Positions 1,588-63,928 of a stretch of 64,000 nt of DNA are shown piece after piece. How positions within the stretch are numbered: the stretch's first letter is position 1; every line of letters starts with the position of its first letter. The position numbers and the translations under genes were made by a program. Source of the DNA: Phaeosaccion multiseriatum (lineage: Eukaryota; Protista; Ochrophyta, other classes); assembly GCA_965112735.1 (NCBI GenBank), contig OZ218957.1, positions 3,348,001-3,412,000 on the forward strand, written 5' to 3'. Below the pieces are notes generated by a model. It searched no databases. It saw only the letters and a list, made by a program, of their open reading frames with translations, and was not told the DNA's origin.

Positions 1588-2634
1588 TCAGCTGAGGTAG
1601 AACTTGTGAAGCTCCTTCATGTGTCTTCGCTGCGGCTGAGCGGCAGGGTGCCACTGCTGCATCTGCAGCCCCATCAAGCGGACGTCTGCTTTGGTGAGAG
1701 GGGCAGGACCGCCACCACTAGTAGCTGCCATCTCACCACCACCAACAGCAGCAGCACTGCCAGCAGCACTACCAGCTGAAGCCCCCGCGGCACCCCCCGG
1801 AGCAGCAGAAGCGCCGTTTGCCTTGCGCCTGCCGAGCGGCAACAAGGCGGCTAGGCAGAGGACGACGGAAGTGTCACAGCCGGAGCCACACACGACAAGC
1901 GCATCGAAGGGTCTAGTTGCGGTGCAGCTGCTGCTGCTGCTGCTCCTGCCGCTGCTGCTGTCCGTAATAGTCCTTCGTCCACAACGGTCACACACGCCAC
2001 CAGGACCACCACTACCACCACCATTACCACTACCACCACTACTACCAACACCACCATCACCAGTGACCTCGCCTCGCCCCGAAGTCTTGTTCAGAAAGGC
2101 CAAAGCCTCGGGAAAGATTACATCCTGCCAAATGCGGGCTTTGTTGGCTCTCTTACCGTTGTTGAGGCAAAGGTGTAGGAAGGGCCGATGCCGAGCACTG
2201 GCCACAACCTTCGGCAAGGCCTCTTCGCCGCAGTACAGGACGGGGGCGCACAGGGGGCAGGGCCTTTGGCAGCAGCGGCAGCGACGATTCTCCATGCCTT
2301 CTTTATGGCCCCCTCCACTTCCATCTGTAACCTCACCGCCACCAGGACCGGTGTCCTCCTCCCTGCGGTCGCTGCAGCTGTTCGTACCACCAACGGCTGT
2401 ATCATCAAGTGCGGCTGCCGCTCCTTTGGCTCCACATGCCTGACAGGCCTGGAGGAGGGCGGAAACGGACGCCACCGTCAGCCCCGTGTCCCCGAGGGGG
2501 CACCACACGGCAGGTGCTGAGAACACCTCCAGAGAGAGGGAGGGAGAGAGACAAGAAGCACTTGCTGTTGTTGATGCGGTCGTGCTTGCAATGCCATTAG
2601 AGCTATCCTCTCCGTCCTCCTGCTCCTCCTCCTG

Positions 2635-2671
<37 letters not shown>

Positions 2672-3535
2672 GTCGCCAACTCCTGCAGCTGCGGTTGCCC
2701 CCTCGTGGTGACGGAGTGCGCCGCGACCACAGCCGCCACCTTGGCATTGAGAGCAATGGCGTTACGTTACAGGGTCATACGGTTACATAGGGGGGCGTGT
2801 AGGGTTCGGTGTAGAGATTTAGGGTTGCTGTTACCTTGGCATTGAGAGCAATCGGGCAGTCCAGCGAGAGAAGGCTCTCGGCGTTGGTCCAGAACATGCG
2901 CGCGGTGAGTCCACGGCACCACATCTCCTCTGAGGATATACACACATACACACACATGGATACATGCACACAGCAGATGGATAGACAGATGGGTTGATGG
3001 ACAGATGGATAGATAGACATATGGATAGATGTATAGATAGACAGATGGATAGACAGATGGATAGATCGACAGATGGGTAGACAGATGGATAGAAAGAAAG
3101 ACGGAAAGATGGATAGATAGACAGATGGATAGGTAGACAGATGGGTGGATAAACAGATGGGTAGATAGACAGATGGATAGAAAGAAAGACGGAAAGATGG
3201 ATAGATAGACAGATGGATAGGTAGACAGATGGGTGGATAGACAGATGGGTAGATAGAGACATGGATCGAAAGACAGACGGATAGACAGATACAGTTTAAG
3301 AGAGATGGGGAAAAGGGAGAAGGATGAATGGGGCTGGATGGATCGGACTCAGACTAATCAGGGTTTAGTTTCAGTTTTCAGCTTACGTGACCTTATCAAT
3401 ATCGAACGCCACCATGATAATGGGACCGATGTCGAAGTCAGAGGTTAGGAGAAGTAGCAGTAAGTCAGTAAGTGGATGGATATCGATCGTATGACGCGAT
3501 GCGCACAAGACTGCTACACGCCACCTGTCAATGGG

Positions 3536-3574
<39 letters not shown>

Positions 3575-6336: not shown

Positions 6337-7490
6337 ATGCCTATGTTCGTCGTGAAGCGCGACGGGCGAAAGGAGAACGTGCAGTTTGATAAGATCACTG
6401 CCCGCATCAAGAAGCTGTGCTACGGCCTGAACGATGACTATGTTGACCCCGTGATGATCTCCCAGAAGGTAAGAGCGAGGGCGGGAGAAGAGCGGGGACG
6501 GGGGGAAGCAGCGCGCAGAGAGAGAAGCCCTAGCCTTAGTTGCATCGCGCTGGTAGTGGTTGGCCTTGTAGGCAGTCTCGGCTGGTACTGTGTGGTGGGA
6601 GATGCAGGCGGGAATTTGAATCGGGCACCATGGCGAGAACCCCGTCAAAACAACAATGCTGCAGTAGTAGTGTAAGTACAGTAGAAGTATGTTGACTGCA
6701 ACAGGGTGATCCCGAGGCTGAAAGAGTGTGGAGGACCAGCGAATGGCGACGGCAGAGACAGGCTGTGGACAGTTTTGAGAAAGGTCGGGCAAGGGAGAGG
6801 AGAGGGGGAGGTTGTCTCTCCCCTCCACCCACGCACCACCCCCCTTCCCCTTCTCCTTCTCGCGAGCCTGAGCCCTTTGTCCTTTCTCTTCCGGTCCTTC
6901 CTCCCCCAAGGTGATCCAAGGAGTATACCCCGGAGTGACCACGTCGGAGCTGGACGAGCTTGCCGCGCAAACCGCCGCCTACATGGCCACCAGACACCCC
7001 GATCTCTCCATCCTCGCGGCCCGTATCTCCGTGAGCAACTTGCATAAGAACACCTGCAAGGTCTTCAGCGAAGCCATCGAGGCTCTGCGCCACTACAAGC
7101 ACCCCAAGACTGGGGACCCCGCCCCGCTCATCAGCAAGGAGGTGTACGAGTGTATCCTGCGCAACAAGGACAGGCTCAACAGCGCCATCATCAACGATAG
7201 GGACTTTGACTACGACTACTTCGGGTAAGGGTTTGTGTGTTGTTGTTGTTGTTGCTGGTCACAGCTGGCTGACGCTGCCTGTTTCCCCTCACCCCCTGGC
7301 CCCTGACAGCTTCAAGACTCTGGAGAAGAGTTATCTGCTGCGGATGGACGGACAAGTCGTAGAGAGACCTTCCCACATGGTGAGCAGGGGAGGGGACGGG
7401 AGAACGGAGATGGGAGGGATGGTAGTGGATGTGCGAGAGAGAATATTCAGGGACGGACTTGATGACCTTAGCGTTTGAGGCATCCCCTCA

Positions 7491-7557
<67 letters not shown>

Positions 7558-10500
7558 GCCTACCACCCCCCCCTTTGAGTCGGTCCCGCCCATGCCGCTG
7601 CTTGCCCCTCCTTGCGTCGCACCTCTCTCCTCTCTCCTCTCTCTTCTCCCGTCCTCACCCTTCTCCTCCCCCCCCTCCCCCTCTACCATCCACTGCCATG
7701 CCTTGCATTGACATCCTCCCCCCTCCCCCTGCCATCCACTGCCGTGTGTCTATCTACCTTACCCTCCTCTGTGCTCTGACAGATCATGCGAGTGGCTGTG
7801 GGCATTCACATGGACGACATCGACAGCGCCGTGGAAACATACAATCTCATGAGTCAGAAGCTCTTCACACACGCCACCCCCACTCTCTTCAATGCAGGCA
7901 AGTCGAAACTCTCTCTCTCTTCTCTTTGTCTCGTCTCTCTTGTGTGTACAGCTCCCCTCTCTCTCTCTCTCTTACACACACTTAACACACACGTGGTGCG
8001 CCACCCCACCCTCTTTAACGCAGGCACCCCTCGGCCGCAGCTCAGCTCGTGCTTCCTTCTTAACGTCAAGGTGAGAAGGCAGAGAGTGTTAACTGACCCG
8101 CCTTCCGCCACTCCCTCACCCAACACATAACCAAACGCCCACCCATCCCCGCCCACTTATTTGCTTGACTTACTCACTTCCTTCCTTCCTCTCCCTTCCT
8201 TCCTTCATTCCTTCCTTCCTTCCTTCCTCCTTCCTCTCTCTTCCTCCGTCCCTTCCTCCGTCCCTTCCTCCGTCCCTTCCTCTCCCTTCCTTCCTCTCCC
8301 TCCCTCCCTCCCTCCCGCCCTCCCTCCCTTTCTCCGTCCCTTCCTCCGTCCCTTCTTCCCTCCCTTCCTTCCCTCCCTTCCTTCCCTCCTTCCTTCCCTC
8401 CTTCCTTCCTTCCTTCCGTCCTTCCTGGCCTTCTCAGGAGGACAGCATCGAGGGCATCTATGACACGCTCAAGCAGTGCGCGTGTATCTCCAAGTTCGCA
8501 GGGGGCATAGGCATCTCCATGCACCACGTTAGGGCCACGGACAGGTAGGTGCAGGTGTTGGTGATACAGGGGGGGGGGGCTGGGGGGGGGGAGGGCACAT
8601 ATTCTTGGGGCACACTTCTTGGGCACGGCACATATCTCCTCTCCTCCCCCTCCTCCTCCTCCTCCTCCTGCTGCTCCTCCTCCTCCTCCTCCCCCCCCCC
8701 CCTCCCCCTCCTCCTCCTCCCCCTCCCCCTCCCCCTCCTCTTGCTCCTCCTCCTCCTCCTCCTCCTCCTCCACCACCACCACCTTCCTCCTTGCCAATGA
8801 ACTGAAACTGTGAACTGAGCTGTCCAGTACCTGTGATCTGTGACCCGTGATTTTTGCTTATTTGACAGTTACATCCGCGGCAGCAACGGGACCTCCAACG
8901 GCATCGTGCCCATGCTGCGTGTGTTCAATGACACGGCTCGCTATGTGGATCAGGGGGGAGGCAAGCGCAAGGGGAGCTTCGCCATATACCTCGAGCCCTG
9001 GCACGCGGACATCTTCGCATTCCTGGACCTGAGGAAGGTGAGTGGGCACTAAGTCAATGGGGGGTGGTACTAAGTCAATGGGTGGGTGGTACTAAGTCAA
9101 TGGGTGGGTGGTACTAAGTCAATGGGTGAGTGGGGGTGGATGGATGCTGATGTGGGTGTGTGACGGTACACACCATCCCCATCGGCCCCTCCCTACTATG
9201 TCAGTAAATAACCCCACACTACATCCCGCTGTCCTCATGGGTCTCTCCTCCATATACATCAGAACCACGGAAACGAGATGGAGCGAGCCAGGGACTTGTT
9301 CTACGGACTGTGGATTCCCGACCTCTTCATGCAACGGGTGGAGCAGGACGGGGATTGGAGCCTGTTCTGTCCGAACGAGGCCCCAGGCATGCCGGACACT
9401 CACGGGGATGACTTTGAGGCGCTGTACACAGGGTATGAGGCGGAGGGGAAGGCACGGAAAGTCATCAAGGCGAGGACTTTGTGGCAGGCCATCGTGGATT
9501 CGCAGGTGAGGGAGGGAGGGAGGGAGGATGGAGGGGAGGGAGGGAGGGAGGTGAGGAGAAGGATGGAGGGAGGGGGAAGGGAGGGAGGGAGGGATGGGCT
9601 GGGTGAGAGGGAGGGAGGGGGGAAGGGAGGCATGGGTGGGTGGGCGGGAGAGGGAGGGAGGCATGGGTGCATTGGCGCGTCAGCTCAGCGATGTCGCTAC
9701 CGATTGATCTGGAACTAAACTCAAACTCAAACTCTCGCTCTCATGACATACCATGACCCACAGGTGGAGACAGGCACTCCTTACATGTTGTACAAGGACG
9801 CGTGCAACAACAAGTCCAATCAGAAGAACCTCGGCACCATCAAGAGCTCCAACCTCTGCACCGAGATCCTCGAGTACACGGACCCGGGGGAGGTGGCCGT
9901 GTGCAACCTCGCCAGTCTCAACCTCAGGTTAGTACGGCAGTTGGTGGTACGGCAGTTGGTTGTTCCGTTGTGTGTTGTGATATTTGTAGGCTTTGGGTGT
10001 GGGTTAGGGTTGGGGTTATTATGGGTTTGCTTGGGAGGGAATGACCCAACTACCCAACCAAACAACCAACCAACTCCTCTCTGTTTGACACACGTTGTAT
10101 ATACAGCGCCATGGTGAAGACCACAGATGTCGGCCCTCCCACCTTCGACCACGACCTGCTCAAGAGCATCACCAAAGTCGTCACCAAGAACCTCAACAAG
10201 GTTAGTATGTCAGTGAAAGGGGAGGGAGGGAGGGAGGGAGGGAGGAAGGAGGAGTGAGAGAGAAAGGGGGGAAGGGAGGGAGGGAGAGAAAGGAAGAGGG
10301 AGGAGAGATGCTCAGTACGAGTAGTGGCAAATAAGGCGCTTCTTGACGACACGGCAATGATGACTACACCTTTCAAGTGGGAATCTCAGCGAGCGGGTCT
10401 GTAGTGGACGCCGCTTTGAACTCAATTCAGGTCCAAGTCCTCCTTAAAGGGGGACAGGCTGAGTCTTGTCGCAATTGGAGCACGTCTGTTCTTCTCCGAG

Positions 10501-12237
10501 CAATTAGGCAGACAGAGAGAGAGAAAGAGAAAGAGCCTTCTCCCCCTCTCCCTCCCTCCTTCCCTTTGTGTCATTTTCTCTCTCCCTTCCTCCAGCCTCA
10601 CCCTTTGTGTACCTCATTCCCTCCCGCACCCTCGCTAGGTGATTGACGTCAACTACTACCCCGTGGATGAGGCACGTTACAGCAACATGCGCCATCGCCC
10701 CATCGGCATCGGCGTACAGGGCCTGGCCGACTGCTTCGCCCGCCTGCGCGTCCCCTTCGACTCCGATGAGGCACGCACCATCAACAAGGATATCTTCGAG
10801 ACCATGTACTTCGGAGCCCTCGAAGCCAGTTGTGAATTGGCGGCCAAGGACGGCACCTACGAGACATACCCGGGGTCCCCTGCCTCCGAGGGCTTGCTCC
10901 AGTTCGACATGTGGGGGGTGACGCCTTCCTCCGGCCGCTGGGACTGGGCAGGCTTGAAGGAGCAGATTGCGCAGCACGGCTTGAGGAACTCGCTCTTGTT
11001 GGCGCCCATGCCGACGGCTTCGACGGCCCAGATCTTGGGCAATAACGAGGGCTTTGAGCCTTTTACCTCCAACATGTACAACAGAAGGGTGTTGGCGGGG
11101 GAGTTTGCGTGTGTCAACAAGTACCTGCTCAAGGACCTGGTGCGTGAGGGAGGGAGTTGGTGATACGGACACAGGGATGGAGAGAGGGAGTGAGGGAGTG
11201 AGTGAGGAAGGAGAGGAGAGGAGAGGGGAGGGGGAGGGGAGGGGAAGCAAGCATTCCAGTGGAGATGAGGATGAGCGATACAACTATACTCTCTGAGTGC
11301 CCCATCCCTTACCCCTGCCCTAATGCCCTCAACAATGAATGCCCCCTCGCTCTCTTAGGTGGAGCGCGGTCTGTGGAGCGACAGCATCCGCAATCAGGTC
11401 ATGGCCAATGGAGGGAGTGTACAGGGCATCAGCGGCATCCCCAAAGACATTAGGGACCTCTACAAAACCGTCTGGGAAAGTGAGTGTATCGTACCGCAGT
11501 TGGAAGCACAGCAGTTGGTAGTACAGCAGTCACTCACCTACCCTGCCCTGCCCTGCCCTGCCTTGCCCATACACCTGTACCTTTCCCTAACCCTTACAGT
11601 CAGCCAGAAGAAGCTCATCGACATGGCCGCCGACCGAGGGGCCTTTATCTGCCAGTCGCAAAGCCTCAACATTCACATGGCGGACCCAACCCACGGCAAG
11701 CTCACCTCCATGCACTTCTACGCCTGGAAGCAGGGCCTCAAGACCGGCATGTACTACCTGCGCACACGGCCCCGTGCAGACGCCATTCAGTTCACTGTGG
11801 ACCAGGACAGCCTCAAGCAGGTGTGTGTGTGTGTGTGCGTGTGTGTGTGTGTGCGGGTATGTGGGCATGGGTGTGTGTGTATGTGTGTGTATGTGTGTGG
11901 GTGTGCGCTTGCGTGTGCGTATGCGTGTGGGTATGTGCGTGTGTGCGTGTGTGCGTGTGTATGTGTCGGTGTGTGCGTGTGTGTGTGTGAGTGTTGATTG
12001 CTGATACGTACCCCCATTGGACTCCGTTGGACTCCCTCGTCCCTGGGCAGACAGACGCTGAAACCCTAGAGGCCGTTTGGTGCTCACCCCTCCTATCCAC
12101 TCCCATCCACTGCCATCCCCCCATCCACTGCCACCCACTGCCATCGCTGCCCCTTCCAGTCCAACAAGGAGAACGCAGCGGCGGCCGCCTCGGAAGCGAA
12201 GTACGAAGACGAGGACTGCCTCAGTTGTGGGGCGTGA
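6337..12237 (+). CDS. RNR1: Ribonucleoside-diphosphate reductase large subunit (class Ia R1), about 14 exons
   Basis: ATP-cone [22 protein letters not shown]; [17 protein letters not shown]; [19 protein letters not shown]; [12 protein letters not shown]; VCNLAS; [12 protein letters not shown]; [15 protein letters not shown]; [10 protein letters not shown]; last exon 12160-12237 SNKEN...DCLSCGA* with the terminal CxxC. Confidence 0.98.
9047..9132 (+). repeat. 22-bp tandem repeat (tactaagtcaatgggtgggtgg) x4 next to an RNR1 5' splice site
   Basis: Direct reading; the array ends in a second ggtgagtggg identical to the donor context. Confidence 0.85.
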
Positions 12238-12299
12238 GCGCTTGCGTGCGTGCGTGCGTGCGTGCGTGAGTGCTCAGCACCACCCACCCCCCTTCTCAT

Positions 12300-16300: not shown

Positions 16301-17568
16301 ACGTCGCTGCTACTGCGAGTTGTAATCCTGTCCCTTCCTGTTGTGCCCCCCCGTCCTCGAGCTACTGCTGCTGCCCCTGCTGCTGAGTCGCAAAATGCCG
16401 TGTACCGGCCATCGGTATCGATGCCTGCCTTTGCATCTTGCAGCAAGGTGTACACACGATGATAGGCTTCTTCGCTACTGCAGCCTCGAATCTGCTTCAG
16501 ACTCTCCACCAGATGCATCTGGCGGGTGTGGTTATTTACAGGCCATCCTCGTCCTCCTCTGCGTGGCCCTCCAGATCGTGCTCCTCCCCATGCTCCTCTT
16601 CCTCCTCCTTGCCGCGATTCCTGCTGCGGCCGCCGTTGTGGCCACGGTTGATACGGCTTATGCTTCTGGAGCACTTCCCCACGTTCCTCCCTACCTCTCT
16701 TCCGCCCTACCCTGCCTTGGCGGGGTATTGAGGGCGGCCGAGCCCCCTGCTGCTGCTTCTGCTGCTGCTGTATCACCAACGGACCCCCCTGTTGCACCCC
16801 TTCAGGTCCAGTTCTGCTGCTGCTACTGCTGCTTCTGTCTGTGGCACTGCTTCCCTCTCTGTCCGACACTCCCTCGTTACTCGCGACGACGGCCTCGTCA
16901 CCGCGCGTATAGGGACCATGCCCCCCGAAGGCAGGAGGAATGCGTGGAGAAGATTTGATCTCGTCGTGAAGCAATTGCCGCTTCTCATACGGCTGCTGCG
17001 CCTGCTGTTGTCGCTGTTGCTGTCGCTGCCGCTCCTTCTCCCCCCCTTCTCCCTCCTCAAGCACATTCAGCACGCTCTTCTCCACTATCTTGCCACTATA
17101 TCCGAGACTGCTGCTCTTCGTGCTCTGCCCACTATCGTCATTGCGGCTTTCCTTGGTCGTTGTCGTCGTTGCTGTCGCCACGTTGTACCTCCTGCTCATT
17201 CTACCTTCAACCCTGCAAGCATTGTCCACTCCCAGCTCCGAAGACCGTACAGATAGAGACTCATTCCTTAGCCTTCTCCTGCGTGAACCTCTCCAAGGAG
17301 ACAAACCCCCGGCGCTGCCACTGCCGCTACTACAAAGGAAGCTGGCATGATGACGAAGATGACCACCACATCCCTTCTTCCGCGCTGTCGTGCTACCACC
17401 GAGTCGTGCCACTGATGGGGGCTCTACTTTTCGGGCTGGCGCTTCCCCTTGAGCACCACCAGCATGCCAAGAACACACTGGGAAGAGCATGCTCTTGCTG
17501 CGTATGCCCCTACCCTGTTTGTTTAGACCACAGAGCTCATTTCGTGTGGCCTTCTCTTGCTTCAGCAA
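13333..17568 (-). CDS. Pentatricopeptide repeat (PPR) protein; large first exon plus two short 3' exons; start codon uncertain
   Basis: Many PPR motifs (VVSYNIVINACGLAGDWQRALGFLRDMMQRGITPNIVNFNTAMSACCKAG etc.). The 3' exons read GGDAPSALAFLKEMEERRVALNTVHVNNALM|ACCKAGSVKEALRLL..., with TAG at 13333. Confidence 0.92.
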
Positions 17569-39838: not shown

Positions 39839-39871
<33 letters not shown>

Positions 39872-50700: not shown

Positions 50701-52656
50701 GTGCTGGCACTCAAGAAGGTGCAGCTGGAGAGCGGCGACACGCAGGCCCTCCACAACTATGCCAATGAAATTGGTACGTACGCTACTTACAATACGGACA
50801 CTTTTCTCTCTCTCTCTTCTCCCTCTCTCTTTCCATCCCTCTGTCGCTTTTTCTCTTCATCTCCCTGTCGCGCCCCCCCTAGGTGCTCCTCTGTGTCTTT
50901 CCGTATCGTATCGCCCAAATGTAACCGTCCCTACCCAAATGTAACCGTCCCTACCCCGTCTGTCTGGTGTTGTGCGTCCGTGTCCTGATATTATGTGCCC
51001 CCCTGCCCATCCCCTTACCCTTCCTCTACCCTCTCGTCCCCTCTCGTCCCCTCTCCTATCCTCAGCCCTTCTGCAGCGCCTCCGCGGCGACCCTGCCATC
51101 ATTGGGCTCGTGGATGCCCAAGTAGAGGAGGCAAGCGGCACCATACACATGGTCATGGAGATCGGGGAGGTGGACCTGCACAATCTACTCCAGGTGGGTC
51201 AAGGGTTGTGTGCCAGGGTAGAAGGTGTCAGGTGTCAGGTGTGAGGTGTCAGGAGGCAGGCTCACCCATCACCCCCCGCCCCCCAACCAGGCCAAGAAGA
51301 GCGAGGGGCAAGGCATCGCTGGACAGCAGCGGCTCCCCTCGGGCCTGAGCCCCAACTTCGTTCGCCTGACCTGGCAGCAGATGCTCACGGCGGTGCGAGC
51401 CATGCACGAGCAGAGAGTGGTACATGGCGACCTCAAGCCTGCCAACTTTGTCTTCGCCAAGGGGGTGAGTGAGGGAGGGAGTGAGGGAGGGAGGGAGGGA
51501 GTGAGTAAGTGAGGGAGGGAGGGAGGGAGGGAGGGAGGGAGTGAGTGAGTGTGTGAGTGAGTGAGTGAGTGAGTGAGTGAGTGAGCAAAGGGTTCGGGTG
51601 GGGTGGGGTGGAGGTGAGCACACGACCACACACGCATGCACTCACACACACTCAAGAGAGAGAGAGAGACATACAAAGAGAGAGGGACAGACAGGAGACA
51701 AAAGCATACGTAACGTCGTACTGATTGATTCATCTTGGGGAAGAAGGAAGGCATGCGAGACATGCACCCGCCTCAGCTCTCTCTTACTCTTAAGCATCGT
51801 TATTAGCACCCTGTTCCATTAGTGCTTCGTTTGTTCAGTATCCGTGAACCCCCTTCCCTTCCTCTGCCCTCTCGCCCCTCATCCCTCATCCCTCTCCGAT
51901 TCACTCATCCACAACCCGCTCTTGATGACTTACTCATCGAAGGTGCTGAAGCTCATCGACTTCGGTATCGCTAAGACCATCAACAACGACACGACCAACA
52001 TCTCCAGGGAGAGCCAGGTAAGTCAGTGGGGAAGTGGGTGCGTGCGTCACAGATGCCAGTGGGTGCGTGGGTGCGTGGATGCATGGTTGCTTCCTCCTCC
52101 TCTGATGTACCGACCAATACCGATGCTTGCTTAGCGTCTCTCTGCCCCTGCCCTCCTCTGCCTTTCTTTCCCTTTGCCCTCATGATGGCGCGGTGGTTTG
52201 ACGGTTGCTTCCTCCCCTTCCTCCTCCCTCTTTCTCTCCCCCCCCCCCCTCCCCCCTCCCCCACCCCCTACCCACCCAACCACACCACTCACAGATGGGC
52301 ACTCTGAACTACATGTGTCCCGAGGCCCTCCTGGATACGGGCAAGGGACAGGTGGACCCCCGCACCGGCCAGAGGGGACAGCTTATGAAGCTGGGCAGGG
52401 CATCAGACACCTGGTCACTGGGCTGCATACTCTATCAGATGGTGTACGGACACACGCCCTTCAGCCATCTCAGATGGGTTCACAAGCTGCAGGTAGGTGT
52501 GGTTGGGTGTGGTTGGGTGTGAGGGTTGGGTACTGGGATGAGTTGTTGGGTTGGACTTGGGACTTGGGCAACTGCAACTGCAACTGCAACTGCAACTGGG
52601 AGGGAGGGTGGGGGGGATACACGTGTATGCGCTGTGGCCACACAGTGAGTGTGCAC

Positions 52657-52687
<31 letters not shown>

Positions 52688-53170
52688 GCATTGTCTCTTG
52701 TGGCGTCTTGACTGTGTGAAACGCTCATCCCTTCTTTTTCTCTGAAGGCTTGTTTCAATACGTGACACTCTACGCTGCCTACCTATGCAAACATGTCCTC
52801 ATGCTCGTCCGCGATCATCTTACGTATCCTCTTACGTATGTCCCCTCCACCCCTCCTCCCACCCCCACCGCCCCATCATTTCTTCCACCTTTCCTTCGTT
52901 GTCTCTTCCTTCCATCCCTTGCCATTCACTCAGGCCATTGTGAACCCCCAGCACGGTATCGAGTACCCGTCTCTTGCAGCACAGGACCCCTCACTGCTGG
53001 CGACGATGCGTCTTTGTCTGCAGAGAGATCCCGCCAAGCGCCCGGCCATCGACGGAGAAGGAGAAGGAGGAGGAGGAGGGGGGGGTCTGCTTGCACACGC
53101 CTACCTCAACCCCAGGGGCGTGGCTTGCAACCACCCTAGTCACCAGCACCCTCAGCACCCTCAGCACCAG

Positions 53171-53201
<31 letters not shown>

Positions 53202-53440
53202 CAGTGGTGCCTCTGTCGGTGGTCAAAAGGATCATCACCGAGGTTGTGAAGGTGGTTGGGGCCGGACCACCCCCAGCAGCACCAGCAGCAGCAGGAGAAG
53301 AAGAAGAAGAAGAAGAAGAAGGAGGAGGAGGAGGTAGCAAGGACGTCACGCAGTCTGTATCGCCGGCAGAGGAGTATGAGGAGGCGGTGTGTAAAAAGGT
53401 GCTGCTCAAGCTTCAGGGGCAGGGGCAGGGCAGGCACTGA
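47744..53440 (+). CDS. MPS1: Dual-specificity mitotic kinase MPS1/TTK
   Basis: [96 protein letters not shown]; N-terminal KEN box (MMGDKEN). Confidence 0.95.
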
Positions 53441-54108
53441 CAGGCCTCACTCACGCCCAAGAGACAGGGGGAGGGAGTGACGCCTCAAGTAGGAGTTTCC
53501 GTTTCGGTTTCAGTTTATTTGTTTATTTACATACTAGACCTTATCGTTCCCGAAGGTCGATATGGACGTATGCGTGAGAGTGCCAGTCTTGCTTATGAAG
53601 TGCGAGGTGTGAGCTCACCACGTGCGTTCGCACGGGGCAGTGCGGCGCAGTGGAAAGAGCTGCTGTCGGAGCTTCAAGGCCGCGCAGGAGAGGCGTATGG
53701 GCATGTGAAAAGAGGGGGGGGGGGGCAACACTCAACAGTAAGAGCCTGCACGCCGCCCCGGCAAAAGCCCCAGCAGCGGAGACAAGGAGGAGAGACCCAT
53801 GGCACAAGGTGTTTGTTTCATGTACAGAAGGCATTTCTTCGACTTCGAGACAGAGCCTCCTCTCTTTTCTGTGCTGCCCCTCAGGCACTAAACCGCCTCC
53901 ATCGGCCCTTGTGCTGCGATCCAGCAACTCCGCTCGGGGAGCCGCAGAGGATAGACTTGACTGCCTCCAAGAAAGCGAGCACCGGAGTAGGAGGGGGGTC
54001 CGTCCGTCTGTCGACATCAGCCCAGAGCGCATGTCCTCTGAGCATCTCTTCAGTAACACCAAGAGGTAACTCGGCCCTACCTGGGTCAGCTCAAGCCCCA
54101 TTCCGAGG

Positions 54109-55485
54109 TCAGTCTTGTTCTTCTGGGCAGTCGCAGGGGTGTCCGTTAGCATGTATCCACTGCTTCATCTCCTTAAAGGGAGCATCAGCCCAGTCCTCCC
54201 ACGATTGCCAAGCCATACCTGACCGGAACTGTGGGCAACAACTGCTGTCCCAGGGACACATGATCTCCTCCGAGCGGAGCCATTTGAGCACAGACAGGCC
54301 CTTTTCGTGACCAGTTGCCCACTCACAGACTTGTTCATCCCACCTGAACAGCTCCCGTGCGTTGGCGTGCAGCCACTGCAGCACCTCCAGAGTACCACAT
54401 TCCCCGGCCGCCCACCCCGCGCACGCTCTCCACCTGTCATAATCCCCCTCTTGTTCCGCCTCTTGTTCCGCCTCCATCTCAGCCCTGACCTTGGGATGAT
54501 GGAGCACCCATTCCACCACAGGAATACGCCCCGATTCAATAGATCCTTGCAAAAGCCCATGATGAAATGGCGCGTTCATCTCGTCTCCGAGCAGCCATTC
54601 CACCAACTCCAGCTTCCCCTGCAGAGCTGCTTCCTCACACACACTTTCATCCCACGGGCACCTCGGCTTGTCTGGAAGGACCCTTGACCGGAGCCACTTG
54701 AGCACACTCCGACTGTGGTGCTCGTTCCTCACTGCAGCGGTACACGCCCCCTCATCCCAGGGACAGCCCATGTGATGGAGGGCCTTGCACACGTCCACAT
54801 CTCCATGCAGAGCAGCGGCCATGAATGTTTCGACTGTAAGCTCGTAGCCGTGCCTCCTGGCCCAGTACAAGCGCTCCACGGACGCCACTACACTCGCCTG
54901 ACTTGTCTTAGCTGGGTGCGCAACGATGTAGTAGCCCCTCCACGCCTTGCACACCGTCGCGACGAAGGCGTACTCCCCCTGCCCCACGAGCTCCATCACC
55001 ATTCCATAAAGCTCCTTCATACCAAAGGCCTTTGCACAGCCGCCCCTGCCAGGAAGGGAAGCTCGGCGAGAGGGCGCACGAGCTTCTGAATCAGGAGGGC
55101 GACATCCGCCATCTCGTGCGCCTCCTTTGGAGCCCCACTGCTTTCGTTTGGTGCCTCCCCTTCTGTCTCCCCCTTTCATCCCCTCCTCTACTTCTCCATC
55201 GGAGTGGTCGAGGCTACGGTTTCTGGGGGCTTCTGACGACTGTACTTCGAGGCGGAGGAGGAGCAGCTCCCTCTCCCTCTCGTGAGCCTTCTCTTTCGCC
55301 TTCTCGTTCAATAGCTTGGACTCCCTCTCCCTCGCGGCTTGGAGGTGCGCAAGCAGCGCCTTCCTCACTTCCACCTTCTCACGATCCGCTGTTGCTGCTG
55401 CGGCTCCCAAGCTCAGCCCCAGGTAGCTGCCCTGCCCGCTTAAGGCCTTCTCTACTGCCGCGATGCTCCCCCGTATGTCCTCCAT
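54109..55485 (-). CDS. Intronless ankyrin-type repeat protein (CPWD family) with F-box-like segment, paralog A
   Basis: Repeats AALHGDVDVCKALHHMGCPWDEGAC, RCPWDESVCEEAALQGKLELVEWL, GTLEVLQWLH and CPWD; F-box-like LYGMVMELV...FVATVCKAWR. Confidence 0.85.
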   Translation of the reverse strand: MEDIRGSIAAVEKALSGQGSYLGLSLGAAAATADREKVEVRKALLAHLQAARERESKLLNEKAKEKAHERERELLLLRLEVQSSEAPRNRSLDHSDGEVEEGMKGGDRRGGTKRKQWGSKGGARDGGCRPPDSEARAPSRRASLPGRGGCAKAFGMKELYGMVMELVGQGEYAFVATVCKAWRGYYIVAHPAKTSQASVVASVERLYWARRHGYELTVETFMAAALHGDVDVCKALHHMGCPWDEGACTAAVRNEHHSRSVLKWLRSRVLPDKPRCPWDESVCEEAALQGKLELVEWLLGDEMNAPFHHGLLQGSIESGRIPVVEWVLHHPKVRAEMEAEQEAEQEGDYDRWRACAGWAAGECGTLEVLQWLHANARELFRWDEQVCEWATGHEKGLSVLKWLRSEEIMCPWDSSCCPQFRSGMAWQSWEDWADAPFKEMKQWIHANGHPCDCPEEQD

Positions 55486-55860
55486 GGTTTGGGAGTTTGG
55501 TAGAGTCCGGGGGTTGGGGGAAGTGGAAGAAAAGACGAAGAGAGAGAAAGGACTTGATAGGAATCACCTAAGAAGCTGAATGTGTGATTGTGGGTCCATG
55601 TGACTCTGTGTCTCCGGCCAGTGCTATGTTCCCCCTGAGAGAAAAAAAAATGATGCCATCTGAAGAGTAGGTACATATCACCAACACGTCAACTTCCCCG
55701 ACCATCTCATCCATCTGATCACGGATAGACGTTCTCGGTTCTCGGTGGTATTCTTAAACACAACCCCCACTTCACTCTCCAGCCTTTTCTCTCACTCAAA
55801 CATACCTCCCACCCACAGCCAAGCGTAGTGAAACTGGAAGGAAGGAAGAGGGAAAGGAGA

Positions 55861-57396
55861 ATGGAGGGCAGCACGCTTAACGGAGCCGCGAATGCGGGAG
55901 GGGGCGTGACGGGCGAGAGTCAAAAGCCTGGGGGAGCGCGGGGGGTTCTTCCGCGAGGCTGCACCCGTCTACGCAGCAGCGGACCCGCGGCATTGATACT
56001 GGTTGCCGGCCGTATTCCGAGCAACAAGGCTCTGTGGGGCGTGTGCAAGGAGGTCGACCAGGTAACCTGCCGCGTATTGGAGATCAACGCCGACATGCCC
56101 CGTGCTGTCCAGTCGCGTATGCTGGGTATGCTGAAGCGGCAGCAGCAGCAACAGCGGGAGGAGATTCATCGCCTTGCTGCCGCTTCTTCTCCTCCCGCCT
56201 CCACCCAGGGAAGAGGTGTCGGGGAAGGGTGGCGGCAGCCCGAGATGGTGGGGACAACCACGCAGCTGGATCCAGCGGGCTCCTTTCGCGTCACGGCGGT
56301 GCGCCTCGGCCTCCAGAGGGGGTGGGGAGGGGGGGAATCTGTTGATGGCGCTCTCGCTACGAAAGTGTTGGCACTGTTGCCGCTCTCGGTCAAGCGTGTG
56401 CGTTTCTCTGGGTACGTCTATCCATGCAGCCCTGTTGCTATACCCGACGGAGTGGAGGAGCTGGAGTTTCCATCGTGGTCAAAGTTCTCCGGCCCTATCG
56501 CTCTCCCGGACTCGCTGAAGAAGATCACTTTTGGCACGGACTTCAGGGCTGATTTAGAGTTACCAAGCTCTCTGGAGGAGTTGAAATTTCCATCTTTCTC
56601 GAGCTTCGACAAGTCAATCGTCCTCCCTTCCTCGCTCAAGAAGGTCGCTTTTGGAAAACACTTCAATCAGACTGACTTGGTGTTACCAAGCTCTCTTGAG
56701 GAGCTGGAGTTTTCAGTGCAGTCAAAGTTCGACAAGCCAATCGTGCTCCCTTCCTCGCTGAAGAAGGTCACTTTTGGAAAACACTTCAATCAGACTGATT
56801 TGGTGCTACCAAGTGCTTTGGAGGAGCTCACATTTCAACCCAACTCCAGATTCAACAAGCCGATTGCGCTCCCCTCCTCGCTGAAGAAGATCGCTTTTGG
56901 CGAAAAGTTCAATCAGGCTGATCTGGTGTTACCGTGCTCTCTGGAGGAGTTGCGGTTTACATACCATGATAAGAGCTCGGAGTTCAACATGCCAATCACT
57001 CTCCCCTCCTCCCTCAAGAAGATCCGTTTTGGTGAGCACTTCGACCAGCCTGGTGTGGTTTTGCCAAGCTCTCTGGAGGAGTTGGAGTTTGTGCCTTACT
57101 CACGGTTCAACAAGCCAATCGTCCTTCCTTCCTCGCTGAAGAAGGTCACTTTTGGCCATCGATTCAATCGGCCTCTGGTGGTTCCTTGTGGTGTGGAGGA
57201 GCTCAAGATGGGGCACTCTTTCTGCTGCCCGCTGGACCTCCCGGCCTCTCTGCAGACGCTTACGCTGGACTGTACTCACAAATTCCCTCCTGTGGAGGGT
57301 CTGCCTGCTGGGCTGAAGAAGCTCAAGGTTCACAGGACATGCCCGCTGCCTGCACTTCTACCCGACGGACTGGAGGTGACGTATTTTAGGTATTGA
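55861..57396 (+). CDS. Intronless FNIP-repeat (LRR-like) protein with a possible N-terminal F-box-like segment
   Basis: About 5.5 tandem 41-aa (123-bp) double units, LPSSLKKVxFGxxFNQxDLV / LPSSLEELxF....FxKPI; N-terminal ALILVAGRIPSNKALWGVCKE. Confidence 0.88.
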   Translation: MEGSTLNGAANAGGGVTGESQKPGGARGVLPRGCTRLRSSGPAALILVAGRIPSNKALWGVCKEVDQVTCRVLEINADMPRAVQSRMLGMLKRQQQQQREEIHRLAAASSPPASTQGRGVGEGWRQPEMVGTTTQLDPAGSFRVTAVRLGLQRGWGGGESVDGALATKVLALLPLSVKRVRFSGYVYPCSPVAIPDGVEELEFPSWSKFSGPIALPDSLKKITFGTDFRADLELPSSLEELKFPSFSSFDKSIVLPSSLKKVAFGKHFNQTDLVLPSSLEELEFSVQSKFDKPIVLPSSLKKVTFGKHFNQTDLVLPSALEELTFQPNSRFNKPIALPSSLKKIAFGEKFNQADLVLPCSLEELRFTYHDKSSEFNMPITLPSSLKKIRFGEHFDQPGVVLPSSLEELEFVPYSRFNKPIVLPSSLKKVTFGHRFNRPLVVPCGVEELKMGHSFCCPLDLPASLQTLTLDCTHKFPPVEGLPAGLKKLKVHRTCPLPALLPDGLEVTYFRY

Positions 57397-58407
57397 GTTG
57401 AGGTGGAGAGTTTTGTGCTGCGCACGTGGGGAGAAAGCTTGATCAACACGACGTCAACACGACCTGAATGGCACCACCACCGCCCAGCATCGCTCGCCGC
57501 GGCGTTCTCGCTATTCGTCTCCATCATGCGCAACCGAGGCGACATTGTGTGGCAAGAAGGTGGAGACAAGCAAGCTACGCAGAGCGAGCACCGCACAAAG
57601 CCGTGCGTCGCTGGGAAGGAGACGAGACGACACAGGAGGACTGCGGGGATGAACCTAGGAGGAGGGAAGGAGGGGGCGATTCCGCACATCCACGCGGGAG
57701 AGGGCTGGGAACGCAAACGTGGGCGAAGCAGTCGCGTGGCGGGGGAGGAACGTCACGAGACAATGACCGGACAGGGAAGGAGTTACCCTACTTACAGCAC
57801 TAAGGGCCGCGTAAGAATCAATCAAACTTGAGCAGTGGCGACCTCGGGAGCGCTCAAAACAAAGCATCGTAGTTGAACTTGCCCAACTCGGGGTTCAAGA
57901 GCGAACCCAGGGGGGTCAGATTTGTCTCCCCCCACGGACGGGAATGTGCTTGTCGAAGGTGTGGTGCAGTGTACATCTTGCGCTTGCGGTGAATAACAAG
58001 GAATGAGACCAGAGAGTAGGAGCGGGTGAGCCGTCCGTCAAATACGGCAAGTGTACTTGTTTAAGTCACTTCACTGTATATATATACTATACTGCCTTCC
58101 GAGGCCTTCCGAGGCCTTTGAGTCCCGCCTATTGAGTGGAGCCCAACCCCCCGTCCTCGCCACAGGGTTTCCGTTTCAGTTTCCGCTTGCGAGTCCGACC
58201 CCAGTACGCACACTCCGAGACTCAGAGTGGAGAGGCTGAAAGGTATTGCCCTGCTCGAGATCATCCTCATCCGGGCATGCCAGTGATACCGCCTTCGGAG
58301 ATGGAAACACAGCACCAACTGTTCCATGTTAATCGTTCGCCGCTGAGTCCCTCCCTCCGCCTTTGTCTCACAGTCCGAGAAGTCACACACCGTCCCTTGC
58401 TGCTTCC

Positions 58408-59635
58408 TCAGTCTTGGCAGTCACACGGGTGTCCATTGGCGTGCACCCATTGCTTCATCTCCTCAAAGGCGACAGGGGCCATGTTCCACCTTGCACCCAG
58501 GCGGTCTTTCAGCTTCTGTGGGCATGCCCAGCTGTCCCACGCACACAGGACCTCCTCTGATCGGAGCAATTTCAGGACAGAGAGACTCTTGGCGTGGTAC
58601 ACCGCATGATGACACACAATTGCATCCCACCTGCACAGCTCGCGTGCGTTGGAGAGCAGCCATTGCAGCACTTCTAGACTGTCAGCTCGGGTCGCCCAGT
58701 AAGGAGCCGACCTCCACCTGCTCTGCTCCCCTACCGTCTCCATCTGAGCCCTAACTTTGGAGTTGTGAAGTACCCACTCGATCACAGGGATACGCCCTGA
58801 CTGAATAGACCCTCTCAAAATGCAAAACTCAAATGGTGCGTTTGCCTCGTCTGTGAGCAGCCATCCTAACATCTCCAGCTTCCCTTGCCGAGCTGCTTCC
58901 TCACACACCCCTTTACTCCATGGGCACCTCTCCTTGCCGGGCAGGTCCTCCATCCGCAGCCATTGGAGGATGTTCAGTCCATGCCTCTCATTCCTCGCAG
59001 CAGCCTCACATACGCTAGGATTCCAGCCACAGCCCATCCGGTGAAGAGCCCTGCATATGCCCAAATCTCCGTCTTGTGCCGCAGCTCTAAACGTCTCCAC
59101 ACCCAGCTCATACCCGCACTTCCTGGCCCAGCTCAAGCGCTCCACGGACTCCACCACACTCCTGACGTATGTTGCCTTGGCTGGATACATGTGTCTGTAG
59201 TGTTCGTTCCACTCCCTGCTCACCACCCCTACGAAGAAGTTGTGGCCACCACCAGTCCACTCCATCACTTTGCTCAGCAACACAGCCTGAGCGAGGGCCT
59301 GGTCACAAGCTTCGAAGGTCCCACCCTCGCTTCCCGCACTTGCGGCAAGGGCGGTGAGGTCAGGAGCAGCTGCCACGCTGGCTGCTCCTCCTCCTCCTCC
59401 TCCTCCTCCTCCTCCTGCTCCTCCTCCCCCCCCCCCCCCCTCCTCCTCCTCCTCCTCCTCCTCCTCCTCCTCCTCCTCCTCCTCCCCCTCCTCCTCCCCC
59501 TCCTCCTCCTCCTCCTCCTCCTCCTCCTCCTCCTCCTCCCCCTCCTCCTCCTCCTCCTCCTCCTCCTACCACCCGGGGGGATTCGGTGGGTGGCGCTGGT
59601 CTTTTGCTGCCCTGCTTTCGGTCCGGTCCCTCCAT
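58408..59635 (-). CDS. Intronless ankyrin-type repeat protein, paralog B; apparent +1 frameshift in the C15 run at 59426-59440
   Basis: Colinear with paralog A (SVERLSWARKCGYEL, RCPW..VCEEAA.QGKLE, EMKQWVHANGHPCDC). The ATG at 59635 is 1 nt out of frame with ORF 58408..59376. Confidence 0.8.
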
Positions 59636-59858
59636 ACCTTTCAATCAGTCTTTTCGAAGGCAGGAAAAAAGAAGAGAGGAAGAAATTGAAGAGAAAAATG
59701 CAAAAATGAGAAACAGGAATTGTGATAGCTTTGGTGATACGGTGGCAAAGGGTTGGCAAACACTCCATCAAATATCAAATATCGGCCTTCCAACCTCCAA
59801 CAAGGGGATCCCTTGGCTTTCTGGCTCAAGATAGCCGCGCACAGCCTATTGCGGTGAT

Positions 59859-62800
59859 ATGGCATGGCGATGGAACTTGCGTTGGACACTCAGGCGAAGG
59901 CGGCGAAGCCTGATGTCCACCCATAGGGCGGCTGACCAACCCACCGCTGCCGATGCTGGGCTTGTGGAAGAGCTCTGTTCTTTGAGTTTCCAACTACGAG
60001 CAACAGCCTCAGCAGCCCCAGCACCGGGTGTGCAAACAAGAGGGAGCAGCAGAGTATGGGGCTTGCAGCAGCGGAGAGGGTTGGCAGGGCAAGCAAGGCA
60101 TGCACCACCCCCGCCACCACGAGCAGCACCACCACTATCATCAGCAGCCCATGCGATGACACTTGAATCATTGCAAGAGGAGCTGGCTACCTTGGGTAAG
60201 CAGTCTCAGTGGAGGGGTGTGGCTCCCTTGCTGGTGAAGGCCAAGGCAGCTGGAGTGCCACCAAGCCTGGCGGTGTATAAATCAGCTCTGTCAGTCTTAG
60301 CAAATGCTGGACGGTGGAAGGGCTGTCTCTCGCTGCTGGATGAGATGCGTCGCACGGGCACGATACCACCCGACGTCGAAGCGTTTACTATTGCGCTGCA
60401 GGGGTGTCGAGTTGCTCGACGGAAAGATGAGCCCCCACGTCTGCAGCGGCATGTAGCGGCAACAACATCTCCTCCACTAGCACCATCATCATCATCATCG
60501 AGCACAGGGGCCATCGCCAGGGACGGTATGAGCGCCGAACGGATGCAGTTCGAGATTGCCTTGGTGGCACTGTGGAGCGTTGCCGAGGTGCGGCAGCGCT
60601 TGTCGGAGGGGGCGGGGCGCACCTCCATCGTCGGTCCCGCTGATGGTAGAGTGACAGAGACGGGAAGAAGCAGCAGCAGTAGCGGCCCAAGGAGCCGCGA
60701 AAAGGGGGGAAGTAGTGGGAGGGCGGCCGGAGGAGGAGGAGGAGGAGGAGGAGGAGGGCGGCATGGTGGGCCCAAAGAGACGGAGAGGGCGACGAGCGGC
60801 GGCAACAGTGCTCCCTGCGCCCAATCGCTCTACGCCAAGGCCATGGCTGTGATGAAGGAGGTGAGGATGGCGGAAGTGGAGCAGGTGGATATGGACGCAT
60901 TTATCACTGCCGCCTCCAAACTGAGTCAGTCGCAGCACTTCGACGTCGCTGCTGCCCTTCTTGACGTTGCGTTTAGGCGTAACCTCACCCCCAAGCAGAC
61001 GCAGCAGTTGGTGATACAGCAGGAGAAGATAGATGGTGTGGAGGAGGCAGCAAAGGGGGGGGGGGGAGGGGAGGAGGAGAAGGAGTGGGGCACGATGAGC
61101 GCCGCTTTGTATACCACCGCCTTGGACGTGTACAGCCGGGCGGGGCAGCACGCGTGCTCGGCAACGCTCCTCAAGCAGATGCGGCGTCAGCAGGGCATGT
61201 CCATTCCTGATATCGCCATCTTCAACACGGCACTCACGGACTATGCAAAGGCAGGGGAGGTGGACATTGCCCTTCGCTCACTGCAGGATTGGAAGCGTGA
61301 CGCGGTGGCGACAGCGGCGACATCAGCAGCAGCCGCAGAAGGGGGAGGTGGAGCAGCAGTAGCAGCAGCAGCAGGAGGAGGAGGAGAAGGAGGAGCAGCA
61401 GGAGGAGGTATCGTGGGTCCAACTCTGGTCTCCTACAACATCGTCATCAATGCGTGTGCCAAGGCGCGACGCCTCACCCCTGCCCTCTCCCTGCTGCAGG
61501 AGATGCGCTCAGCACGAGCCCTTGGCCCAAGCAATGCGGTCCGGCGTGATTTGTGTAGCTTCAACTGCGCGCTGGACGCATGCGGCAAAGTAGGAGCCTC
61601 TCGAAGGGCGCTGGAGCTGCTGAGGACCATGAGGGAGGAGGATGGGCTGACGCCTGATGTCAAGTCCTACACCGCCGCAGTGGTGAGTGGTGTGAAAGGG
61701 AGGGGAGGGGGAGTGGAGAAGAGGGGAGGGGAGTGGACTGGACTGGACTGGAGTAGTCGAGTGGAGTAGAATGGAGTAGAGGGAACAGGAGTGGAGTGGA
61801 AATGAAGTGGAGGACAGGGGAGGACAGGACAGGACAGGGGAGGGGAGGGGAGGGGAGTGGAGTGGGGGTAGCGTGACCACAACCACAGGGTTCTCTCTCG
61901 CCCTCTGTCTCTCTCTCTCTGTCCTTCTCCCCATCCCTCTCTCTCTCTTCCTCCCTCCTCTCCTTCCCCCCCTCTCTCTCGTCTCCAAAGCACGTGCATC
62001 ATCCTTACATCCTTTTTGTGTGTGCGTGTGTGCGTGTGTGCGTGTGTGCGTGCGTGTCTCCCCCCTCCCCCCCCTCTACGAAGGTATCATTCATGAAGAG
62101 CCCCCGAGGCACTTGTTCAGAGGAGAGGGCGGCGGAGGCCGAGCGATTCTTGGGGCTCCTTGACGAGATGAAGTCCAGACTGCCGCATTGGGATCGAGTG
62201 CGTCGTCAGGCAGAGGCATATGGGGGGGAGGGAGGGATCGAGGGAGGGGGGCGCGGAAGGAAGGAAGGAAGGAAGGCAGTTTATCGCCATGTCGGGCGAA
62301 CGCCAGGCGTGCTGGTGGTGGCAGGGGATGTATTTGCTGGGCAAGAGGAAAATTGGCTTCGCCTGTCTCTCCCTCTCTCTCTCTCTCTCGATATATGTCT
62401 ATCGATCTGTCGGTCTGTCTGTCTCTATCTGTGGGCACCTTTGAACCCGCTTTTACCTCGTTAGCCCTGCGTGGCATCGCGCAGTTGCAGCAAATACTGT
62501 TTCCCTCGCCCTCACATCTTTTCTCGTTGTGCTGCTCTTCCCCCCTCTTCTCACCTCCCGAACCCATTGTTACTCACACCCTTTGCAGTCGTGCTTTAAC
62601 GCTGCGGTGGCGACGTGTAACCGCCACGGACTGTTTAGCAAAGCGATGGAGCTCCTCGATGGGATGGAGCAACAGGGCCTGCCCCACAACCTCTACCACT
62701 ACCAGGGCCTCACGCACTCGCTGGTGGAGCTCTCCTCCACATCCTCGCTGACGGATCCGACAAGCCCGACAAGTGGCGGAAGTAGCAGTGGCGGTAGTAG

Positions 62801-63178
62801 CAGTGGTGGTGGTGGTGGTGGGCACGGCGAGACTGCCGTGAATCTGCTTCGAACCATGCGTGAGCGAGGGGTGATGCCGGACTCCGCCTGCTTTGTCAAT
62901 GTGATGAAGTGTTGCAGCAGAGACGGAGACGACGACACCATTCTCCAGCTGCAGGAGGAGGCAAGGAGAGAGGGGGTAGCGTTGAAGGAGGTCACAGTGG
63001 CGACGACCATATTGACGGCTTGTGGGTACGCCACGGACGGGCGGAAGCTGCTGAGACGGTGGTGCGAGTTGAGGGGGGAGGGGGGGGGGCTCAAGGGGGC
63101 CGTTGCTTCTTTCTGCGTCTACAGCGCGATGTTAGGCGCTCTGGGGAAGTGCCAAGAGAAGGCGAAGGGGGCGGCAGC

Positions 63179-63216
<38 letters not shown>

Positions 63217-63928
63217 CAGCACCAGTTGGTGATTCAGAGGAGCCGCCCCTGTCGCCAAGTGAGCTGCAAGACGCCATGGACAAAATTTACGCGGAGGGCG
63301 TGTCTCAAGGGGTCATTCTGCACTGGCTCGCTAACGAGGACAACGTGTAAGTGTCGGGTAGGAGTGGGCCGCAGAGTGTCTGAGTGGGCATGAGTGGGTG
63401 TGAGTGGGCATGAGTGGATCTGTCTAGCACTCGTGCATTGCTGCTGTTGTCCTACTGTTGTCCTAGTGGTGGGTAAAAGGCGGAGACCTCGTCGAAAACT
63501 GAAACTCTTGCCTCCTCTCTCCCTCCCCCCTCGCGTCCACCAGACTGGACTTCCATGAGTTTAACCTCCCGATGGTGAGGGCGGCACTCCGATACGTACT
63601 GAGCGGAGGGGGAAGAGGAGGAGGACTAGGAGTAGGAAGGGGCGATGGCCCCACCACAGATGACAGCATACAGCAGTTGGTGCTACAGCAACAAGGGGAG
63701 CAGGGGAAGCTGACCATTGTGACAGGCAAGGGGCGACGCAGCGACTCGGGAGAGAGCCTTCTGCAGCCCCAGACCCTTGTCTGTCTGCTCGAGATGGGCC
63801 TCGCTGACGTTCGGACGGTGAAGGACAATGCAGGTCGAGTGGTGGTGCGCGTGCCAAGGAGAGTGCTCCCGTGTGAAGCAGGCCCTCAGCAGCAGGAGCA
63901 GCAGCAGTTGGTAGTACAGAAGCAGTAG
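59859..63928 (+). CDS. PPR-SMR protein, multi-exon
   Basis: PPR motifs (LVSYNIVINACAKA, SFNCALDACGKVG, PDVKSYTAAV, PDSACFVNVMKCC); last exon SMR motifs LDFHEFNLPMVRAAL...LTIVTGKGRRS...NAGRVVV; stop at 63928. Confidence 0.9.

Follow-up and report, generated by a model that had tools for sequence, protein, structure and literature searches.

The window analyzed here, the whole 64,000-nucleotide stretch of Phaeosaccion multiseriatum contig OZ218957.1 (assembly GCA_965112735.1, positions 3,348,001 to 3,412,000 of the forward strand), carries a ribonucleotide reductase (RNR) large-subunit gene, a thiamine-biosynthesis gene, several PPR open frames, a kinase gene, and a block of ankyrin/FNIP-repeat genes. 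Scattered through it is a short DNA word, the exact 11-mer GTTGGTGATAC, together with its GGTAC variant GTTGGTGGTAC. This word is a genuine, lineage-specific, DNA-level dispersed micro-repeat, and no described class among those tested fits it.

We counted the word on both strands of the full 64-kb window, and the full set used for statistics comprises 33 copies. The exact 11-mer is present at 17 sites (8 plus, 9 minus) and the GGTAC variant at six, and every position that an earlier, sequence-only reading had listed for the two proved correct. That reading also held the word to be over-represented far past chance, which high-order Markov models bear out: dinucleotide shuffles predict 0.01 copies of GTTGGTGATAC and 0.01 of GTTGGTGGTAC, and models trained on the window predict 0.05 (order 3) and 0.4 (order 5) copies of GTTGGTGATAC. 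It takes an order-7 model, one that has effectively memorized the word, to near the observed count. One-mismatch matches are likewise in excess (16 versus 1.5-4 expected), and two-mismatch matches (31) lie close to background. Among the variants of 1-2 nt claimed earlier, some ten (11514, 15072, 22588, 25885, 26683, 41191, 45038, 63225, 63676, and 63907) have the same GCA...AGC flanks as the exact copies and stand; the one at 55675 does not, and we consider it, along with matches at 22815, 59730, and 28902, probably chance because the usual flank context is absent. At approximately one copy per 2-4 kb, the word ranks first among the non-low-complexity 11-mers of the window and is its sole dispersed, non-simple word family of this size.

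That the word is an artefact or chance product, whether adapter sequence, misassembly, or a side effect of microsatellite composition, is extremely improbable. The one point in its favor is the general simple-repeat richness of the window. A microsatellite or low-complexity by-product was rejected on the order-3 and order-5 expectations given above; the copies lie internal to genes whose reading frames stay open; and contigs from sequencing runs of two samples in two studies contain the copy-rich stretch (word shares of 0.94-0.97 and 0.64). We know of no common sequencing adapter that the word resembles, and an adapter or assembly error is an unlikely source.

Aligned copies give the consensus (GCA)n-AGCA-GTTGGTGATAC-AGCAG-(CAG)n, in which the 11-mer is the conserved unit and its edges are sharp. 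Outside a CAG context (8557, 11156, 42896, 39721, 50658, and the left side of 16770) similarity ends abruptly at the 11-mer borders; no copy extends past the 11-mer, save for generic CAG units, and half-copies or truncated copies are essentially absent from the window. Most variation falls on the two central purines (GA in 17 copies, GG in six, AG in two, and AA, CA, and GC in one each), position 8 accounts for seven of approximately 13 genuine one-mismatch copies, and exact copies outnumber one-mismatch copies. Neighboring units stand exactly 15 nt apart at three places (2399/2384 on the minus strand, 9940/9955, and 11499/11514), and one tandem pair, exact copy 26656 and a one-mismatch copy, has a 27-nt spacing. 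No flank duplication or terminal repeats are demonstrable around the word, and in copies that lack consensus flanks the 4-mer on the left does not match the one on the right.

The unit exists at the level of DNA and is not a peptide motif. The sequence-only reading had likewise placed the constraint on nucleic acid rather than protein; its translations (QLVIQ, AVGDT/AVGGT, VSPT/VPPT) are right, ITN and YHQ occur besides, and the word is found on both strands and in mapped introns. Confinement to a single frame, as expected of a peptide motif, was looked for, and the word proved to run in five. A peptide motif was rejected on these grounds.

Its intronic placement is clearest in the RNR gene, mapped at 6337-12237 (+), whose exons match Pfam Ribonuc_red_lgC (1.7e-63). 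There are 13 introns, and removing twelve of them yields a continuous conserved protein. Four (introns 6, 9, 11, and 12) hold the word in sense, starting at intron positions +13, +13, +17, and +35; elsewhere in the 13 introns it is found at no position, and none of its copies there is antisense. A kinase gene at 48-53 kb (+), whose first mapped intron is 50542-50670, carries three further copies. The copies in these two genes are as follows.

8557-8567, plus strand: exact copy in RNR intron 6, sense, starting at +13.
9940-9950, plus strand: GGTAC variant in RNR intron 9, sense, at +13, with a degenerate unit at 9955-9965, 15 nt downstream.
11156-11166, plus strand: exact copy in RNR intron 11, sense, at +17, within (AGGG)n.
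11499-11524, plus strand: half-degenerate unit GTTGGAAGCAC followed after 15 nt by an AGTAC variant, in RNR intron 12, sense, at +20 and +35.
49612-49622, plus strand: exact copy in the low-complexity N-terminal part of an exon that continues into the kinase glycine loop, reading AVGDT.
49711-49721, plus strand: GGTAC variant in the same kinase exon, reading AVGGT.
50658-50668, minus strand: GGTAC variant antisense to the kinase, in the last bases of intron 50542-50670, with the acceptor AG directly after.

The nearness to splice sites claimed by the sequence-only reading holds for 8557, 9940, 11156 (to which 11514 is added), and 50658. The 14 mapped introns (6469-12160; 50542-50670) begin G-rich and end C-rich, their GC skew being +0.46 in the opening 80 nt and -0.52 in the closing 80 nt (Wilcoxon p=1e-4), and because of this composition the orientation rule in introns is a special case of a rule about the purine strand: across the window, 27 of the 33 copies have purine-rich surroundings (80 flanking bases, read on the word's own strand; p=3e-4). 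The repeat flanking the word is, on that same strand, CAG, and never CTG in runs of at least two units. Predicted folds of the introns often join their first and last thirds, and the introns show no general excess of stability over shuffles, the exceptions being 10201-10638 (z -4.5) and 50542-50670 (z -2.7).

Two other RNR introns also contain repeats. Intron 4 (7898-8023) is a GC-AG intron whose final 16-20 bases repeat the upstream exon's end (ACTCTCTTCAATGCAG / ACCCTCTTTAATGCAG), as expected if the intron was gained when sequence was duplicated locally or when an insertion duplicated a long flank. Intron 7 (9048-9133) contains a 22-bp tandem repeat that holds GTGGGTGGTAC, which is the GGTAC variant of the word with one base changed, three times at +23 to +67.

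Exonic copies occupy low-complexity stretches, namely loops between PPR repeats (15072, 16770, 61007, 63225), the kinase exon's N-terminal part, and a 938-codon frame; the exception is 42896, which lies antisense in ordinary coding sequence. No copy in the window lies inside a conserved domain. Apart from a cluster at 39.4-41.4 kb, treated below, the remaining copies are as follows.

2384-2409, minus strand: GGTAC variant (2384-2394) and a degenerate unit CTTGATGATAC (2399-2409) 15 nt upstream, in a 392-codon open frame, reading AVGGT.
15072-15082, minus strand: one-mismatch copy in a low-complexity loop between PPR repeats, sense, reading QLAIQ.
16770-16780, minus strand: exact copy in the same PPR open frame as 15072, at the edge of a CAG tract, reading PLVIQ.
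20715-20725, plus strand: GGTAC variant at the downstream end of (CAG)6.
22588-22598, minus strand: one-mismatch copy whose right flank, AGTAGTA, is in common with 26656.
25885-25895, minus strand: one-mismatch copy antisense in a 938-codon plus-strand open frame, reading ISPT.
26656-26693, plus strand: exact copy and, 27 nt on, a one-mismatch copy (tandem duplication), VGDT frame.
29633-29643, minus strand: exact copy in a context that looks non-coding.
42896-42906, plus strand: exact copy antisense in a minus-strand open frame of ordinary composition, reading ARITNFS.
45038-45048, minus strand: two-mismatch copy with typical flanks.
46508-46518, minus strand: exact copy downstream of (CAG)9, reading QLVIL.
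61007-61017, plus strand: exact copy in a loop of the second PPR gene, reading QLVIQ.
63225-63917, plus strand: variant copies at 63225, 63676, and 63907, each in sense orientation, of which 63225 lies within the third PPR open frame.

The minus-strand frame that holds 42896 ends at a GTGAGT donor near 42590; a donor guessed upstream of this copy was wrong, the copy sitting antisense in a minus-strand exon. Among genes with a Pfam-supported strand, 10 copies are sense and one is antisense; if long open frames are counted too, the figures become approximately 17 and 8.

The ankyrin/FNIP-repeat gene block (52000-59700) contains no exact copy, as the sequence-only reading had said of these genes, and has fewer CAG hexamers than most of the window; two of its ankyrin paralogues are approximately 72% identical (54468-54895 versus 58734-59161). 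The thiamine-biosynthesis gene (HMP-P kinase/TMP synthase) is followed at 19777-20282 by a 57-bp tandem repeat of 8.9 copies, 97% identical. The repeat unit restates that gene's exon end and 5' splice site (...PSYISL|GTGAGTAC), and therefore nine tandem copies of the gene's own donor junction trail it. As a general donor extension in the window, GTGAGTAC was tried and rejected.

These placements could reflect a selected cis-element, in which GTTGGT-RR-TAC would be bound by a protein or small RNA acting on DNA or pre-mRNA, for example a splicing factor or an R-loop/chromatin factor just past donors, and its abundance would be kept by selection or biased repair. The sense copies close behind RNR donors agree with such a site, as do the 10-to-1 preference for sense in Pfam-supported genes, the sharp 11-mer edges in every context, the concentration of variation on the two middle purines and at position 8, and the excess of exact over one-mismatch copies. 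However, nine of the 13 RNR introns lack the word, among 25 copies in long open frames approximately 8 run antisense (five of them in one gene), and a few point mutations cannot turn CAG repeats into the word; a selected element therefore also needs a copying step. We regard it as somewhat unlikely.

With regard to simple repeats, the sequence-only reading described a 9-nt insert in CAG runs, flanked by CAG as a target-site duplication. The tie to CAG tracts is real yet looser than this. Of 28 perfect CAG tracts (at least four units), seven, or 25%, have the word no more than 12 nt away; roughly half of the copies are bordered by no more than one CAG unit per side; and several lie in G-rich or ordinary sequence, where the 11-mer alone is conserved. 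The target-site duplication is unsupported as well, in that no duplicated flank is demonstrable. Word density and CAG density correlate weakly in 4-kb bins (Spearman 0.48, p=0.06), and a preference of the word for the downstream edge of CAG repeats is a trend only.

The copies are also unevenly spread, and the densest part of the window is a single coding region.

39491-41339, mixed strands: 10 clustered copies that share a single 938-codon minus-strand open frame, reading QLVIQ, AVGDT, or VSPT; members at 39491 (-), 39685 (+), 39721 (+), 39830 (-), 40498 (+), 40580 (-), 40936 (+), 41011 (-), 41191 (+), and 41329 (-).

This region, 39.4-41.4 kb, holds 10 of the 33 copies but 13% of the CAG hexamers (p=0.008, post hoc). 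Orientation flips at eight of its nine neighboring pairs (about p=0.02 under random orientation, likewise post hoc), five copies are antisense within this single gene, and convergent word/reverse-word pairs lie 75-140 nt apart in one continuous frame. We rejected these pairs as hidden introns or MITEs (miniature inverted-repeat transposable elements), given the continuous open frame, the unrelated interiors, and the lack of an AG after the reverse word.

The same pairs nevertheless invite comparison with remnants of DNA transposons or introners, the word then being a terminal inverted repeat or an excision footprint of intron-creating elements; its sense orientation near donors and antisense orientation at an acceptor would suit such an origin. 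Against it, the pair interiors are unrelated and lie inside the continuous 938-codon frame, without flank duplication, the four word-bearing RNR introns have no reverse copy at their far end and otherwise nothing in common, and copies are mostly solitary. Excision footprints of known transposon superfamilies are, moreover, shorter and variable. We judge this origin quite improbable. Individual candidates were also rejected: a MITE or cut-and-paste DNA transposon, since the interiors of inverted pairs are unrelated and coding and no flank is duplicated; an introner element, since RNR introns 6, 9, 11, and 12 have the word alone in common; and a 5'-truncated retrotransposon without long terminal repeats (non-LTR) or short interspersed nuclear element, since there are no 5'-variable extensions, no half-copies, and no reverse transcriptase in the scanned frames.

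Searches for a known family or relative returned nothing equivalent. Rfam gave no match at gathering score and no tRNA genes were found (both over positions 1-41700 and 41760-64000), and a structured-RNA or tRNA-derived origin was rejected on that basis. Positions 41711-41748 fall in a G/A-rich 29-bp tandem repeat. Approximately 35 open frames of the window, compared with Pfam, contain no reverse transcriptase or transposase domain; no inverted-repeat elements with a shared interior occur at the word anywhere in the window; and self-BLAST of the window, with 41711-41748 masked, yielded no paralogous pair with one member bearing the word and the other lacking it. Protein searches, including HMMER, found only distant relatives (at most 54% identical); the nearest, at 53-54%, are in Ectocarpus and Tribonema and put the alga with the ochrophytes, and exact look-ups of eight open frames found no match. 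A metagenome scan with a 20-mer and a viral scan with a 16-mer gave mostly single-copy matches in low-GC DNA with no CAG or simple-repeat context, and four viral loci held two copies; we judged these matches unrelated or chance. The literature, searched by sequence, gave only primers and, searched by topic, nothing equivalent. Likenesses to a tRNA primer-binding site (TGG...), for which no tRNA or LTR link was found, to a 5' splice site minus one base, to the U6 ACAGAG region, and to Chi are unsupported leads.

Several observations bear on how the word may have spread. Sub-variants recur (GGTAC six times, AGTAC twice), and non-consensus right-flank triplets are common to neighbors within 5 kb in nine pairs versus 2.8 expected (p=0.0016, post hoc). 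Recurrent variants, common flanks, and the cluster all fit local copying from existing copies, both direct and inverted, and inverted copies would stem from a template switch linking a CAG arm with a CTG arm close by. In addition, a second word unrelated to the first, GATGGCAGTGGA, has four exact copies in the window and 13 at no more than one mismatch, versus 0.68 expected. It resides in G-rich simple sequence (7418, 7689-7735, 12096-12145, 21283, 32377, 40783) and partly parallels the main word in introns: RNR intron 3 has a one-mismatch sense copy at +39 and antisense occurrences 40-95 nt ahead of the acceptor, and RNR intron 13 has approximately four antisense occurrences in its last 65 nt. 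Because a second word behaves alike, a general copying process seems more likely than a machine for one word.

Such a machine would perform dedicated, templated micro-insertion, with a reverse transcriptase/telomerase-like ribonucleoprotein or a nuclease-polymerase pair adding one unit of 12-15 nt to 3' ends where simple repeats break, copied from a fixed template that would itself begin and end in a short repeat (AGCA...AGCA). The AGCA-core-AGCA(G) consensus has the shape of a template whose two ends each bear an alignment repeat, and the 15-nt spacing at three places, the fixed unit length with sharp edges and no truncated copies, and the fixed orientation relative to the repeat strand are all as expected. 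Yet the second word would require further templates, locally clustered sub-variants with linked flank differences are unexpected from a single master template, some copies lack AGCA ends, and the window contains no candidate enzyme or template. A dedicated inserter is, in our estimate, unlikely.

We therefore favor, tentatively and somewhat short of an even chance, short-patch copying from existing copies as simple repeats are repaired or replicated, with selection acting afterward. Of the origins proposed earlier, the data agree best with templated micro-insertion at simple repeats, with the agent and the insertion step being ones that we infer. Under short-patch copying, the word would multiply as DNA, needing no enzyme of its own: when simple repeats break or forks stall in them, repair would copy short patches from existing copies, through template switching or synthesis-dependent strand annealing, with priming by GCA/AGC or G-rich flanks common to thousands of loci. 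Selection would then act as a filter. In-frame copies would persist in low-complexity coding loops, and others on the purine-rich donor side (sense) and the pyrimidine-rich acceptor side (antisense) of introns; copies would be lost from conserved domains and from the one frame with a stop codon.

A number of observations weigh against this account. Twenty-one of the 28 perfect CAG tracts are without the word, and no second CAG-embedded island recurs within the window. The copies outside a CAG context have no CAG homology and resemble a fixed-length insertion or a selected site more than homology-driven copying. The statistics on common flanks and on the cluster were computed post hoc, and local repeat composition could account for part of them. 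Finally, the chance of four random copies all starting in the first 35 nt of RNR introns is 2.8e-4 (3,526 nt of intron; computed without counting orientation), and these copies hug the donor more tightly than the G-rich intron half predicts, which hints at targeting or function. The readings are partly compatible, in that a copied word could have been taken into use near donors. Explanations outside those considered here are very improbable.

If this picture holds, the word would represent an undescribed kind of repeated DNA, 11-15 bp long and present about once per 2-4 kb, that lacks transposon hallmarks and also enters protein-coding exons of unrelated genes. Very short sequences could then spread through a eukaryotic genome by riding simple repeats, which would offer a handle on sequence exchange between simple-repeat loci, on the making of low-complexity protein regions, and on polarized introns.

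Among known systems, telomerase adds interstitial telomeric repeats at breaks, a precedent for one short templated sequence at many sites; the present units, unlike those, are single rather than arrayed, and the word bears no relation to TTAGGG or CCAGG repeats. Introner elements are transposon-derived introns that occur in aquatic protists (PMC9860276). The present word resembles them in lying at intron ends with polarity, sense past donors and antisense ahead of an acceptor, whereas introners are whole introns similar over their full length; here only the short word is common, and copies are mostly exonic or solitary. SaTar MULEs of guayule and rice are small Mutator-like transposable elements at microsatellites (PMC5907723). 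Like these and like microsatellite-targeting non-LTR elements, our word consists of dispersed copies linked with simple repeats; unlike SaTar MULEs, its unit measures 11-15 bp, with no terminal repeats, flank duplication, or coding partner in view. A further likeness is to microsatellite interruptions, as the word splits CAG runs in phase, adds a few residues to poly-Q or poly-A, and, by analogy, probably stabilizes the tracts that it interrupts. Known interruptions, however, are point variants arising independently at each locus (e.g., PMC4102424), whereas here an identical 9-11 nt heterologous block stands at unrelated loci, also outside CAG tracts.

The remaining comparison is with bacterial genomic words such as the DNA uptake sequences of Neisseria and Haemophilus, cyanobacterial HIP1, and Chi. 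The host here is, in contrast, a eukaryote in which no DNA uptake system is known; the word goes with simple repeats and a purine-rich strand, with no recognizing machinery known; it is non-palindromic, whereas HIP1 is palindromic; and the fact that variant GTTGGTGG is one base off Chi GCTGGTGG is probably coincidence. As in the bacterial cases, an exact short word (8-12 nt in bacteria) is over-represented on both strands at approximately one per few kilobases, runs through coding sequence in several frames, and sometimes forms inverted pairs. It is conceivable, if doubtful, that the word is a eukaryotic counterpart of these bacterial words, actively written into the purine-rich strand of simple repeats, with which the genome would be saturated, by a dedicated templating or repair system and read by a factor just past splice donors. 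With comparable doubt, we suggest that within this counterpart the factor might aid splicing or restrain R-loops, and that at least two words might together form a genome-wide vocabulary that polarizes introns.

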